A stretch of DNA of 64,000 nt, from sequence record OR770614.1; one strand, given 5' to 3'. The translations under genes and the position numbers were made by a program. Positions 16,185 through 21,055 of the stretch are shown piece after piece; position 1 is the stretch's first letter; each line of letters begins with the position of its first letter. Below the pieces are notes generated by a model. The model saw only the letters and a list, made by a program, of their open reading frames with translations, had not been told where the DNA came from and searched no databases.

Positions 16185-18389
16185 TTATTCAAATATAAAA
16201 TTAGTTGAACCTGTGTCATATACTTTATTTATATAAGTTTTATTTCTATCAATCTTATTTCTTATATAGCTATCATTACTTGTACCTTTTAAGAAAGTCT
16301 TTTCAATAGGTAATTCATTACCTACTTTATACATTCCAAATTTTTCAAATTTATAACACGTATATGAATCAGATTTTACATTAAAAGTTAAACTTGGAAA
16401 TGTCTTTTTAATTTTAATTAAATCTGCGTCTGTATTTAAAAGTGAAATAAAATTATGTGATACATTAGTCTTATTATTAAAAGAAAATGCACAAATAATA
16501 TAACCTTTATAATAAAGAGCGAAGAAGTCAGAATCTTTCCCATAAAAGTCTTCTGTTGAGTGATTTTCAAAGAAATCTTTAAATGTAAAGAATCCCATAG
16601 ATTTAATTTTCACACCGCCATAGTCTAATACAGAATAATCATCTTTAAATAGTAACAATTGATGTAAGAATTTAGCATAATTCTTACCATCAATTCTTTT
16701 AGTTTCATTACGGATATCATCATCAAATAAATTAAGAAGATGGTATCCTTTTTCTTTAAGTTCATTGTATTTCTTAAGTTGATGATACTTAGCATTTATC
16801 TCAGATTTAGTTTCATTAGAATGATATTTAACTCCATTAACTTCAATAGCCAATTTATGTTCTTTACAGAGTATATCAATTTCTTTACCATCTAATAAAT
16901 CTCTATTCTGTCTTTCTATTTCAAAACCTAAATATTTCATTTCATCAGATACTTTTGATTCAGCAATAGATGATTTTCCATTACTACATGATGGACAATT
17001 AATACCTTTTTCTATTAAGTCATTTGCATTTATTTTAAATTCACCATGGTCTTTACATATTACTATTGATCTTTCATATTTATCGCTAGGTCTAAATTTA
17101 CTCATATTGTATTTATCTTTACCATGTTTAATATTTGCAAGTGTTTGATATACTTCAGTCTTTTCTTTTTCAGTATAATCAAAGTTATTAAGATTTTTAA
17201 TCTTAGTATTAAGTGACTTTATACGTTTATACTCTTTTAATTCTTGAACAGAATATTTTCTCTTATCCTTTATTTTTGGTATTGATTCTGGAATTATTTC
17301 TTTTTTATTTTCATTTGATTCTTTAATATTATCCTTAACTTTATCAATATTAAAATTATTAGAAATTTCTCTTTCTATACTTTCTTTCTTCATGTTCTTT
17401 TTAGCTTTTGGTGTTTTCTTTATACCCTTAAGTAATTTCTCAGTTTCTTCTTCACGTTTCTTTTTATTATTTTCTACAATCTTTTCCCAGTCTTTATCTA
17501 TACTAAGTTTTTCTTCTTCACACTTAGGGCAAGCTAATTTCTTATCAAATAACATTTCGTGTATAGATGTTTTAAATTCACCATGTTTTTCACATATAAT
17601 TGGTTGAACATCTTTTTCGTTAATAGGTCTAAATTTAGAAAAATCATAGTTTGTATTATTAGCTTTATTCAGAGCTAAATCATAAATATGACTTTTTTCA
17701 TCTTCTGTATAATCTTTAGTCAACTCTAAAAATAAATCAGGGTCTATGTCTTTTAAATTATTAAAGATATTTTCAGTAGTTGCAACTTCTCCATCTTTTT
17801 TACAACCTGGACAACCATCAAGATTATTCATAAGAAAATTTTTAACTGAACTTTTAAAGCTACCATGTTTTTCACAGATTATATTTTGTTTAGTATTTAT
17901 ACTGTTTGGTTTAAAATTAGATACATCATAAGGAGAATATAGTCCATATTTAGCTATCGTAACATTATAGAAGAATAAATATTTTTCTTCTTTACTTTTA
18001 TTTTTTAAATATCTAACTTTATCTTTCATTTTAGTAGAGCTATTTAAGAAAAATGTATAAGGTTCTAAATATTCATTAGGATCTTCTACCATAGGAGATT
18101 CAAGTCTCTTAGTTCTTTCTTTATTTTTTAAAAATTTCTCAGCGTTAGCTTTATTTTCATTTTCTCCTAATTCAATTATTCTTAAACAACTTTCAAAATA
18201 ATTATCAAACCATTCTTTACTTTTAACGTATTTAATCGTTCTTATTTTAAATTCTTCAGATATTTTTCCTTTATAAGTTACTTTTAATTTATCTTCATTT
18301 ATTTGATAATCTTTATCATTATCTATATTAAATGTATAGTCTTTACCTAATTTTTCTTTAAAGCTTTCTCTTAATTTTTTACCTAACAT
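16185..18389 (-). CDS. Free-standing homing-endonuclease-like protein: three CxxHG...CPxC Zn-ribbon repeats plus Vsr/Hef-like nuclease domain
   Basis: ICEKHG..GCPGC, ICEKHG..ACPKC, ICKDHG..NCPSC; EIDILCKEHKLAIEVNGVKYHS. Confidence 0.7.
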   Translation of the reverse strand: MLGKKLRESFKEKLGKDYTFNIDNDKDYQINEDKLKVTYKGKISEEFKIRTIKYVKSKEWFDNYFESCLRIIELGENENKANAEKFLKNKERTKRLESPMVEDPNEYLEPYTFFLNSSTKMKDKVRYLKNKSKEEKYLFFYNVTIAKYGLYSPYDVSNFKPNSINTKQNIICEKHGSFKSSVKNFLMNNLDGCPGCKKDGEVATTENIFNNLKDIDPDLFLELTKDYTEDEKSHIYDLALNKANNTNYDFSKFRPINEKDVQPIICEKHGEFKTSIHEMLFDKKLACPKCEEEKLSIDKDWEKIVENNKKKREEETEKLLKGIKKTPKAKKNMKKESIEREISNNFNIDKVKDNIKESNENKKEIIPESIPKIKDKRKYSVQELKEYKRIKSLNTKIKNLNNFDYTEKEKTEVYQTLANIKHGKDKYNMSKFRPSDKYERSIVICKDHGEFKINANDLIEKGINCPSCSNGKSSIAESKVSDEMKYLGFEIERQNRDLLDGKEIDILCKEHKLAIEVNGVKYHSNETKSEINAKYHQLKKYNELKEKGYHLLNLFDDDIRNETKRIDGKNYAKFLHQLLLFKDDYSVLDYGGVKIKSMGFFTFKDFFENHSTEDFYGKDSDFFALYYKGYIICAFSFNNKTNVSHNFISLLNTDADLIKIKKTFPSLTFNVKSDSYTCYKFEKFGMYKVGNELPIEKTFLKGTSNDSYIRNKIDRNKTYINKVYDTGSTNFIFE

Positions 18390-18478
18390 ATCATATTCAT
18401 CTCCATATTATAATATTAAGATTATATTTTAATAATCTCAAATTTATAATATATATTTAAAACGTAAAATAAAAATAA

Positions 18479-18508
18479 TCCCAATATCTATTAAATTAGA
18501 TATTGGGA
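18479..18508 (-). terminator. Palindrome family member ending the tRNA/ncRNA transcript
   Basis: TCCCAATATCT-ATTAAATT-AGATATTGGGA with compensatory A-T change, U-rich tail on the minus strand. Confidence 0.75.
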
Positions 18509-18509
18509 A

Positions 18510-19026
18510 ATATGTATAAAGATAACCCTAACCTCTTCGACTAATTTTGGAATCAATCTGTAGGTTAGGGTTATAGTTACTTTTACGAGAAAAGTATAAA
18601 GTTGCTTTAATAATTTTTTATATCCCATAAAGCATAAGAAGGATTAAAGAAACCAATATATGCATGGAACATATTAGGAATCTTGTAGCGATTTAATAGT
18701 CTAGTTTTTCTTATATTAGGGACTAAGAAACTAGAAAACCTAAAAAAGTATTAAAGTCAGATATTTATCACAAATTAATGTAAAATAAGTCCTCTTTAAT
18801 ACTTCGATCTAATAACTAAACGTAAATTAGATCTAAGACTGTAATGATTGTTGTGATACATATATTTAATTTGGCAGATTAAATATATGTGCTATTTTTT
18901 TTACAACTAAAGATATGCCTTAACTTTAGTTGAATCTAATAAATTAAGTTTGGCATATTACTTAATTTATATTTTATTCATAGCAGGTCTGCAGCCAAGC
19001 TATAAGGATGATTAATCCTATAGGGT
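18510..19026 (-). ncRNA. Candidate large structured RNA (hairpin array with complementary loops)
   Basis: No ORF; about ten stems, e.g. 18522-18574, 18701-18734, 18746-18804, 18806-18833, 18858-18890, 18904-18932, 18939-18970, 18981-19002; lies downstream of the tRNAs. Confidence 0.6.
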
Positions 19027-19129
19027 TGTTCCTAATGAGATTCGAACTCATAACCTACAGATCCATAAATTATCCTATCCAGGTATAATTCATAAAATCC
19101 GTACACTCTGACCATTGAGCTATAGGAAC
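19027..19129 (-). ncRNA. tRNA-like RNA with anticodon loop replaced by a long hairpin
   Basis: Acceptor GTTCCTA/TAGGAAC, D arm GCTC-AATGGTCA-GAGT, T arm ATGAG-TTCGAAT-CTCAT; 38 nt between TACGG and CTGTA instead of 7. Confidence 0.8.
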
Positions 19130-19136
19130 ATAGAAA

Positions 19137-19208
19137 CTGCTCTAGTTTGATTCGAACAAACAACCTCTTGATTAACAGTCAAGCATTCTACCATTGAATT
19201 ATAGAGCA
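19137..19208 (-). tRNA. tRNA-Asn (GTT)
   Basis: Cloverleaf TGCTCTA/TAGAGCA, anticodon arm CTTGA-CTGTTAA-TCAAG, T loop TTCGAAT, discriminator G; CCA not encoded. Confidence 0.92.
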
Positions 19209-19223
19209 TTAATAAAAAAAAAT

Positions 19224-19256
19224 AAAAGAGTACATTTATCATCTATGCACTCTTTT
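19224..19256 (-). terminator. Terminator-like hairpin immediately upstream of tRNA-Asn
   Basis: AAAAGAGTGCAT/ATGTACTCTTTT stem (G-U pair on the minus strand) followed by a U-tract. Confidence 0.55.
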
Positions 19257-19457
19257 AAGTAAATAAATATATAATAATATCTATTCATTTTTAATTATAC
19301 GTAAGGAGGCGTATGGATTTCTATTTAAAACCATGACATATTAAAAATAGAAACAAGAAATCAAAGGAACATTTTTAAAGCAACAACAAATGACAAAGTA
19401 AGTTATAATAGAATTTAATCTATTATATTTTTTAGTTAAATCAAAAACTAAAAAAAA

Positions 19458-19494
19458 AAATCTATAATAATTTGACGAGGATCATTATAGATTT
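19458..19494 (-). terminator. Intrinsic terminator downstream of tRNA-like RNA 19562-19631
   Basis: AATCTATAAT/ATTATAGATT stem followed by a long U-tract on the minus strand. Confidence 0.7.
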
Positions 19495-19561
19495 ATACTA
19501 TATAGTTAATTAATATTTTTAAATAAAATTTTTTAATAAATAGGAATTTTAGACCAAAAAA

Positions 19562-19631
19562 AGCTTATCCGAGGGATCGAACCCCGGACACATGATGAAA
19601 ATCATTGCTCTACCAACTGAGCTAGATAAAC
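19562..19631 (-). ncRNA. tRNA-like RNA with a 4-nt anticodon loop (Phe-like scaffold)
   Basis: GTTTATC/GATAAGC acceptor, GCTC-AGTTGGTA-GAGC D arm, CGGGG-TTCGATC-CCTCG T arm, anticodon arm ATGAT-TTTC-ATCAT; own early-type promoter 19644-19658. Confidence 0.75.
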
Positions 19632-19678
19632 TTTCTTCATTATTATAATATATGTTTATATTTCACTATATTACGCTT

Positions 19679-21055
19679 TTAATAAATATAATCTTCGATA
19701 TCAATTTCATTTTGTTTAATTGTCATATCATGGAAAGACTTCATGGAGCTTGTTACAATTGCTTGAGCTACCTGATTGACTAATAAACCAATATTTTCAA
19801 TACCTAATTTGTAAGGTAATTCTCCTGCACATTTACTACAAATATCTTCACTCGCACAATACATAGGACTTCTGAAGTTCAATACTTTCTCAATATACTC
19901 ATCTACATTTTCAGGAGTTAATAATATTAATTGACCTTTTCTTCCTGAAGTATTTTCAAAATATCTATAAAGTAAAAGACTTGCATTATCTTTAGTTAAA
20001 GTTAATTTTAATGTATGTTTTGTTCTACAATCAGAACCTTGTTTATCTAATACAGTTGTTTGGAAAGCGGACATAAGTTTTTTAGCTTGATCATTTTATT
20101 ATCTATATTTTACTATAGATTAGACTATATCTTATGAATTTAATCATTTCTATATTTAGTCGTTGGACAACTTTATTAAGTTGATGCTAGTTAGTTTTAA
20201 CATTCTAGCAATTAATAGAATTTATTGTGAGCATCTAATTTACCCACCTTCTTGAGTACCTAAAGCACGTCCAGCTGAACCAGCTGTCATAATATCACCA
20301 AACATATATAATTCTTCTGGATCAATTCCATCAGCTAAAGAACTCTTAGCAATACGTATTTTACTAGGATCAGCAAAATTTTTATTTGCTCCACGAATAA
20401 GAGCTGTTAATTTAAAGTTATTTTCAAAACTACCTCTTGATTTACTATCATAAATATCAAGATCTGCTAAACCTTCTAATTCTTCCTTACTTAACTTAAT
20501 TAATTCTTCTTCAATAGCACTAATAGCATTCAATTCTTCACCAGGAGTATTTAATGCTTTACCGTATTTCTCTAGTAATTCTTCTTTCTTTTGTTTAACT
20601 TTATCTGGAGCAACCATCATTGTAGTTGTTAAGCTAGAATTAATAAATCCTGCTATAGAGAAACCAAGCCATTGAAGTTTATCAATATACATATTCATAT
20701 CTTTAGTTGTAATAACGTCATTAAGTAATAAACTAGATAGTTCAGATTGTAGATTTCCTACACCTGATCCTCCCATATCTTTATTCATATATCCTATAAT
20801 AGGTCCTATTTTATTGTCTAATATAAATTTATTAAATATATATCTTCCAACTGTTGTTCTTTCATCTTTACTATTATAAACTAAATCTTTTTTAAGTTTA
20901 AATCTATCGCTAGGGTTAAACATTGGTTGTGTATTTTGTCTAAATGCAAATAATTCTTTAAGTTTATCAAGAGTAATATCTTCTTTTTTTATACTTAATA
21001 AAGTTGATATTTCTTTCTCAGATAAATCTTTTTTATCATAAGTCATATTAACCAA
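19679..21055 (-). CDS. rpoC: RNA polymerase beta' C-terminal subunit (probably virion RNAP), spliced; exons 21055-20242 and 20091-19679, 408 aa
   Basis: Splicing gives ALGTQEGGYQAKKLMSAF (bridge helix/switch); RSPMYC..ICSKC Zn site; SMKSFH trigger loop; late promoter 21089-21100. Confidence 0.88.
20092..20241 (-). mobile_element. Group I intron, 150 nt, no ORF
   Basis: P1 GTGGGT/GCTCAC with U-G splice pair; P AATTGCTAG, Q CTAGCATC, R TCCAACGACTA, S AAGATATAGTCT; terminal G. Confidence 0.9.

Follow-up and report, generated by a model that had tools for sequence, protein, structure and literature searches.

A tRNA-shaped gene with a 4-nt anticodon loop beside a virion RNA polymerase gene of the Staphylococcus jumbo phage PB50

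The locus and its phage relatives

The Staphylococcus jumbo phage vB_StaM_PB50 (OR770614.1, here PB50) is an AR9-like phage with a genome of 273.7 kb. The AR9-like phages of this group possess two multisubunit RNA polymerases (see Korn et al. 2020, bioRxiv 10.1101/2020.12.14.422802, the paper on phage Machias, and the Machias record MW349128.1). Within the window, i.e. the whole stretch of 64,000 nucleotides that was analyzed and to which all positions refer, the last exon of the gene for the beta-prime subunit (mid-domain) of the virion RNA polymerase is found on the minus strand at 19679..20074, according to the GenBank annotation of PB50 and Machias and the list of open reading frames. A short tRNA-shaped gene follows at 19562..19631 (minus strand), and no hairpin terminator lies between it and the stop codon of the beta-prime gene (19679). 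Further downstream are a canonical tRNA-Asn and a second, aberrant tRNA shape (19027-19129; Rfam tRNA model, cmscan) that heads a structured RNA.

Two isolates that are independent of each other, Machias and AH12, from the USA and China, resemble PB50 closely over positions 18000-21000 (95.5% and 93.9% identity, respectively). The Staphylococcus jumbo phages Madawaska, MarsHill, S6, PALS_2, SA1 and DC4 match the same positions at 81-83%, and they do so in the neighbouring gene only. The short gene carries no annotation in the records of PB50 and AH12.

A complete cloverleaf with a shortened anticodon arm

The gene comprises 70 nt, including a U discriminator (T in the DNA), and does not encode the CCA end. 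It was delimited by Rfam, ARAGORN and its identity in Machias and AH12. The Rfam tRNA model RF00005 matches 19562-19631 of the minus strand with 45.8 bits (gathering score 29; E-value of 1.5e-6 for the whole window). The acceptor stem consists of 7 bp (G1-C72, U2.G71 and five Watson-Crick pairs), the D arm of a 4-bp stem with the 8-nt loop AGTTGGTA, and the T arm of a 5-bp stem with one G.U pair and the T loop TTCGATC; the variable loop reads GTGTC. None of the 21 stem pairs is broken, and the full set of usual tertiary nucleotides is there: U8, A14, G15/C48, G18G19, A21, G46, T54/A58 and G53-C61.

The departure from a tRNA lies in the anticodon arm (19592..19605, minus strand; read from the sequence and the cmscan alignment). 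It is formed by ATGAT (19605-19601), TTTC (19600-19597) and ATCAT (19596-19592), that is by 14 nt instead of the usual 17, which can be drawn as a 5-bp stem with the 4-nt loop TTTC or as a 4-bp stem with a 6-nt loop. The hairpin folds with -1.8 kcal/mol. In the cmscan alignment the cloverleaf is complete, and four loop positions of the model are matched by a single base. The earlier note on this DNA had described a stand-alone tRNA-shaped gene with canonical D and T arms, a 7-bp acceptor stem, an anticodon arm that is 3 nt short and a U discriminator; direct reading, Rfam and cmscan bear out every one of these details. ARAGORN, a check proposed there, finds the same gene as the Rfam tRNA model and can assign no proper anticodon: it calls a tRNA-??? 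at 19561-19632 (minus strand) with the two-letter 'anticodon' tt.

Judged as an elongator tRNA of the RF00005 family, the gene thus has the cloverleaf and the score, whereas its 14-nt arm lacks the 7-nt loop with U33, the three-base anticodon and purine 37. As the arm is 3 nt short, tRNA geometry implies that the RNA would be unable to place a three-base anticodon on a codon and hence would not decode. No aminoacylation identity set could be recognized in the sequence (U73, U2.G71, no G3.U70, no long variable arm). Open reading frames of at least 25 codons do not overlap the gene on either strand. Its G+C content is 46%, versus some 24% in the surrounding region.

Promoter, leader, trailer and terminator

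The early promoter of AR9, used by its virion RNA polymerase, has the consensus AAATATATATTAT-N6-G(+1) (PMC5312081), and the same promoter core precedes 29 genes of MarsHill (Korn et al. 2020). Comparison with this consensus revealed the motif AAACATATATTAT at 19645..19657 (minus strand), which agrees with AAATATATATTAT at 12 of the 13 positions and is followed by six bases and then by a G at 19638. Five copies of the extended motif are present in the window where 0.10 would be expected (a 50-fold enrichment). The copy at 19645-19657 is the only one of the five with a C at the fourth position. In AR9, a predicted early promoter with a single deviation, at the third position, had no start point (PMC5312081). 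Considering that a one-base deviation at another position went together with the lack of a start point there, promoter activity of the PB50 copy is plausible, not assured. The motif is intact and identical in PB50, Machias and AH12. The early-type promoter put forward in the earlier note is therefore present as a motif of the AR9 type, with the qualification that it is the one copy with C at position 4.

As a result of the T to C exchange, the copy at 19645-19657 also contains AACA, which in AR9 is the core of the late promoter, and TA follows seven bases later. The spacing from AACA to TA is one base longer than in the AR9 late-promoter consensus. Both polymerases of the phage might recognize the site.

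The AR9 spacing rule predicts transcription to start at the G at 19638 and hence a 7-nt leader GAAGAAA (19632..19638, minus strand). The leader is complementary over 7 bp to a T7 tract that begins at the discriminator (19556..19562, minus strand). The segment 19555-19638 folds into a cloverleaf on a closed stem of 14 bp, an extended acceptor stem (-26.1 kcal/mol, z -3.6). The T7 tract, identified by sequence and by a consensus scan that flags the T arm with the T-run as terminator-like, may act as a first terminator and forms a U-rich trailer; AH12 has T8 in its place. A second stop signal is predicted by folding at 19451..19494 (minus strand), where an AT-rich 14-bp hairpin with a T-run (~19494-19451, -10.6 kcal/mol, z -2.7) would terminate both the unit itself and read-through from the upstream gene. 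This hairpin is kept in Machias and AH12, with one substitution in the loop and a T-run of varying length. Apart from the terminator hairpin at its end, the trailer of ~105 nt has no significant structure (z -1.2). The terminator claimed earlier thus exists as hairpin and T-run, although a nearer stop is possible at the T7 tract, which adjoins the tRNA body.

Likeness to other tRNAs

To trace the likeness to other tRNAs, the gene was compared with the tRNAs of the phages K, A511 and Bc431v3 and of Acidisoma (a contig of 62% GC), which served in place of an S. aureus set. The best database matches in BLAST were tRNA-Lys genes of mycobacteriophages (86.7%), which head the list because the T arm is nearly identical. 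The tRNA-Lys of mycobacteriophage Snenia has an identical D arm and a T arm that is equal save one base. The tRNA-Phe of phage K, on the other hand, has a D arm that is equal save one base, the same variable loop GTGTC and the same A26; the combination of GTGTC and A26 is also found in the tRNA-Phe of the one bacterial genome compared. Unlike these phage tRNA-Phe and tRNA-Lys genes, the PB50 gene has no 7-nt loop and no anticodon, has U instead of A as discriminator, and has AT-rich acceptor and anticodon stems. The resemblance of D arm and variable loop to the tRNA-Phe of Firmicutes, proposed in the earlier note, is therefore borne out in part, by the variable loop. The D arm is generic and common to many isotypes, and the best matches are to tRNA-Lys by way of the T arm.

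A gene published as 'tRNA-Phe' in phage DC4 (PMC10638138; MZ779063.1 52143-52236, 94 nt) was considered as a cousin and rejected, as it is unrelated and reads like coding sequence. This annotated tRNA-Phe (locus L017, 1644-1737) looks like a false call.

The second tRNA shape and the remainder of the RNA locus

The tRNA shape at 19027-19129 resembles the short-loop gene in that its acceptor, D and T arms are those of a canonical tRNA body, its anticodon arm is non-standard and it lies in the same intergenic region. The differences are as clear. The second shape has counterparts of 71-103 nt in relatives as distant as Madawaska and S6, whereas the short-loop gene is specific to one lineage; the former is joined to tRNA-Asn on its upstream side and to a long RNA on its downstream side, whereas the latter stands alone. 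Compared by eye and unaligned, the two have no specific sequence resemblance.

In a tick metatranscriptome (run X5) a contig over 18675-19040 reached a depth of 328 and a contig from 19314 to ~20795, with the polymerase gene and the short-loop gene, a depth of 13, where depths are averages over assembled contigs (~1.5 kb for the contig with the short-loop gene). The 25-fold depth of the structured-RNA contig relative to the contig with polymerase gene and short-loop gene suggests that the structured RNA at 18675-19040 is strongly expressed. The segment 19209-19323 of the minus strand holds a sigma-70-like promoter (TAGAAA-18-TATAAT), followed by a hairpin and T-run directly before tRNA-Asn. 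In the same place a hairpin also occurs in Madawaska and S6, though with another sequence, and this element is possibly a conserved attenuator or processing structure.

Distribution and site of insertion

A tRNA search of whole records gave three matches in PB50, three in Machias, two in AH12, two in Madawaska and one in S6. The three matches in PB50 and Machias are tRNA-Asn, the 103-nt tRNA shape with a long insert in its anticodon arm, and the short-loop gene. The latter is absent from Madawaska and S6, which carry a plain hairpin terminator at the position of the cassette of the PB50 lineage. In an alignment, the segment from promoter through tRNA body to trailer stands out as inserted at the former terminator of the beta-prime gene. 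With the neighbouring polymerase protein as query, nine polymerase-gene loci were retrieved from metagenomes (IMG/VR, JGI, ENA). In eight of them the encoded polymerase has 44-85% amino-acid identity; the ninth includes no more than its last 20 residues. A tRNA match is lacking in all nine, and other genes come after the polymerase gene there. Since the gene occurs only in a lineage of at least 94% identity and is absent from the relatives, the cassette is a recent gain.

Searches of INPHARED and of IMG/VR (the latter with three exact or gapped patterns) brought up no relative with a normal 7-nt loop, and a functional ancestor within this phage lineage is thus hypothetical. The possibility, raised in the earlier note, that orthologs have a normal loop found no support: every sampled member has the short-loop form. 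Taken together, we conclude with high confidence that the gene at 19562-19631 is a tRNA-derived, non-decoding gene with plausible signals for early transcription, gained recently by one phage lineage.

Identity in isolates and public sequencing runs

The gene is identical to that of PB50 at 70 of 70 positions in both Machias and AH12. Contigs that span it were recovered from four public runs (an indoor metagenome, a tick metatranscriptome, an isolate-type run and a wastewater metatranscriptome), and the short arm is seen in all four. Among the differences listed for these runs, a single base within the gene departs from PB50, namely 19572 A>G on the plus strand. This corresponds to U to C at RNA position 60, by which a G-C pair takes the place of G.U in the T stem. 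Indels or other substitutions inside the gene are not among the differences listed for the four runs, and in two of them the contig totals leave no room for any. As a query, the 121-nt unit gave hits in 12 runs from six studies, most of them with the share of words expected for the one-base variant. The same 70 bases in two other isolates and the short arm in the spanning contigs of four runs mean that the short arm is not an assembly error, an explanation that the earlier note had left to be checked.

Conservation, decay and mobile surroundings

The earlier note had argued for selection rather than decay. This was not borne out, as the gene is confined to one lineage of at least 94% identity and varies no less than the flanking spacer. 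Over the isolates and the four runs, the differences listed place one variable site within the gene (70 nt) and ~12 within ~390 nt of flanking spacer, and this difference is not significant. The second aberrant tRNA, which the note had called upon for the same argument, does not carry it either in view of its much wider distribution and the lack, by eye, of specific sequence resemblance. The loss of the anticodon loop is the loss of a function-defining element as expected of a pseudogene. The one pair-keeping change fits constraint; it also agrees with the onset of decay, from G-C to G.U, in a genome biased towards AT.

The tRNA locus itself is in flux. The tRNA-Asn (GTT; 19137-19208) is the only canonical tRNA and its presence varies. 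AH12 lacks it and yet keeps the short-loop gene, and the same holds for the majority population of one run (X1), in which a joint 19136>19214 at depth 56 was found beside the intact tRNA-Asn form at depth 19.

The surroundings bear the marks of mobile elements. In AH12 an ORF of 415 aa that resembles an endonuclease (locus L003, 3544-4791) is flanked on either side by a copy of the final ~45 nt of the beta-prime gene and lies just upstream of the promoter of the short-loop gene. It matches DUF7487 and, weakly, the restriction-endonuclease-like MTES_1575, and it appears to be a homing endonuclease that has inserted there. Downstream of the RNA locus, a 'hypothetical protein' of 734 aa is encoded at 16185-18389 (minus strand; DUF723 match), with weak matches to the DUF559 and MTES_1575 endonuclease domains and to a treble-clef zinc finger. 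The product is probably a free-standing homing endonuclease, with an early promoter of its own at 18439-18458. In addition, the contig of run X6 (19452-19888) differs from PB50, among the differences listed, at 14 of 210 positions of the polymerase gene, mostly third codon positions, and at 1 of 227 in cassette and spacer. The boundary of divergence at the end of the polymerase gene implies a recent transfer of the cassette region between genomes that had diverged.

A young pseudo-tRNA or an RNA kept for its shape

The reading that we prefer, with a confidence that is about evenly balanced, is that of a young and still expressed pseudo-tRNA, trimmed but idle, which persists through its youth and through recombination. 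A cassette of early promoter, 7-nt leader, tRNA body and T-tract would have entered the lineage of PB50, Machias and AH12 where the beta-prime gene of the virion RNA polymerase has its terminator. In the tRNA body the L-shape is complete in all its elements, but the RNA presumably cannot decode. The virion RNA polymerase would probably transcribe the cassette early, and transcription that runs on from the late gene upstream may contribute to the transcript. Host RNase P, RNase Z and CCA-adding enzyme would probably trim this transcript to a tRNA-shaped RNA of ~73 nt. Family searches in PB50 and Madawaska found no CCA-adding enzyme, Ro60/TROVE protein (PF05731), RtcB or Rnl2-type RNA ligase; with the CCA not encoded and no phage enzyme to add it, maturation would rest on the host enzymes. 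The gene would be too young to have decayed, and its persistence would be owed to a spacer that is young as a whole and is passed on by recombination, in a region with many homing-endonuclease genes, rather than to any function of the RNA.

Speaking for this reading are the structure with its defect, the lineage-specific distribution, the lack of excess conservation, the flux of the tRNA locus, the mobile surroundings, the lack of partner proteins and the published view of such genes, which together make it a middling probability. Counted against the relic are the lack of a relative with a 7-nt loop, the intact pairs and tertiary nucleotides, the pair-keeping change and the G+C content of 46% versus ~24%. 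So are the promoter motif and terminator, intact and identical in the isolates, the retention of the gene despite the loss of tRNA-Asn in AH12, and the existence of a second conserved non-decoding shape.

Several of these observations would follow naturally if the RNA were a selected tRNA mimic, made in the first minutes of infection, matured like a tRNA and acting via its acceptor end and elbow, an explanation that we regard as less likely. Its target could be a host factor that recognizes the tRNA shape or the CCA end, such as a defence enzyme that modifies or cuts the 3' ends of tRNAs, with the RNA as competitive substrate or sponge. As decoding would be irrelevant to such a role, the anticodon arm would be free to shrink. 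The cloverleaf with its tertiary nucleotides, the early-promoter motif and terminator of its own, the short loop as the sole form seen in three isolates and six studies, the preservation of a pair by the single variant, the retention where tRNA-Asn is lost and the conservation of another non-decoding tRNA shape in these phages all agree with mimicry. They have to be set against a conservation no higher than that of a neutral-looking spacer, the restriction to one lineage of at least 94% identity and the failure to find a partner gene in the family searches. Moreover, a decoy for an anticodon nuclease would need the very anticodon loop that is absent. A doubtful but possible extension joins the short-loop RNA to the rod-armed tRNA shape 430 nt downstream, both being tRNA bodies that the phages would employ as functional modules, with anticodon arms that may become shorter or longer. 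Such a module could be a sponge for a host enzyme that targets the ends or the elbow of tRNAs, or it could offer RNase P and RNase Z a handle.

The position of the cassette suggests a third explanation, which we consider unlikely. The tRNA shape, the A-rich leader and the T-tract may replace the plain terminator and so end and stabilize the late beta-prime mRNA. Elsewhere, mRNA ends are set by tRNA-processing cuts, a principle known as tRNA punctuation. Cuts by RNase P and RNase Z could likewise define the 3' end of the beta-prime mRNA or release the trailer of ~105 nt, which seems equally improbable. Several points are in line with such an end-module: no other terminator precedes the gene after the stop codon (19679), the cassette lies at the site of the Madawaska and S6 terminator, leader and trailer pair over 7 bp into a closed stem followed by U residues, and the terminator scan flags the tRNA shape. 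The end-module would be a parallel to the second tRNA shape, which heads the downstream structured RNA. However, the conventional hairpin and T-run 60 nt later could suffice alone, the trailer has no significant structure apart from that hairpin, and a terminator needs no dedicated promoter.

Finally, the idea, prompted by ARAGORN's two-base anticodon 'tt', of a tRNA able to decode, in which a 6-nt loop on a 4-bp stem would read two bases and lead to -1 frameshifts, is most improbable, because an arm that is 3 nt short should, from tRNA geometry, leave the loop unable to reach the codon with the acceptor end in the peptidyl-transferase centre, no purine follows the two bases where a tRNA has purine 37, and no aminoacylation identity set is recognizable.

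Comparison with known tRNA-like RNAs

The element is already known and not new. It is the same as the pseudo-tRNA CPT_Machias_173 in the GenBank record of Machias (MW349128.1), with which the 70 nt and the flanks are identical and which is labelled 'tRNA-Asn, pseudo'; nothing supports the Asn label. Such tRNA genes were called degenerating by Korn et al. (2020), whose paper does not contain the 4-nt loop, the promoter, the pairing of leader and trailer or the distribution of the gene. What the present analysis adds is the exact defect, the layout of promoter, leader and trailer, the distribution and the mosaic context. If the gene is a relic, the value is modest: an annotation is corrected (missing in PB50 and AH12, mislabelled 'tRNA-Asn' in Machias), and a mobile, fast-changing spacer beside a virion RNA polymerase gene is documented. 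If the gene is kept for a purpose, it would provide a natural tRNA-shaped RNA with its own early-promoter motif that departs from a tRNA only by its 4-nt anticodon loop, and a simple, testable case of a phage that uses the tRNA shape without decoding.

Non-decoding tRNA-like RNAs are known from several sources, such as tRNA-Other of Bacillus cereus, the tRNA-like module of the bacterial Y RNAs (YrlA) and the stable RNAs C and D of phage T4, and some are encoded by phages beside true tRNA genes. Y RNAs need Ro60 as a partner and a Ro-binding helix. PB50, in contrast, has no TROVE-domain gene and the short-loop RNA has no Ro-binding or extra helix, and it does not belong with the Y RNAs. A literature search on phage tRNA-like decoys or shortened anticodon arms yielded nothing relevant to this gene. 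An anticodon-nuclease decoy or a nuclease-resistant tRNA should have an anticodon stem-loop like that of the target, and the loop here is only 4 nt. A further comparison is with the phage tRNAs that act against tRNA-cutting defences, such as the tRNA-Lys variant of T5 versus PARIS (PMC11455837), which are likewise phage-encoded and differ from the host tRNAs in the anticodon loop. The counter-defence tRNAs of the T5 type, however, keep a 7-nt loop and still decode, which the short-loop RNA cannot. If retained for a purpose, the latter would bear on how phages handle the host enzymes and defences that act on tRNAs.
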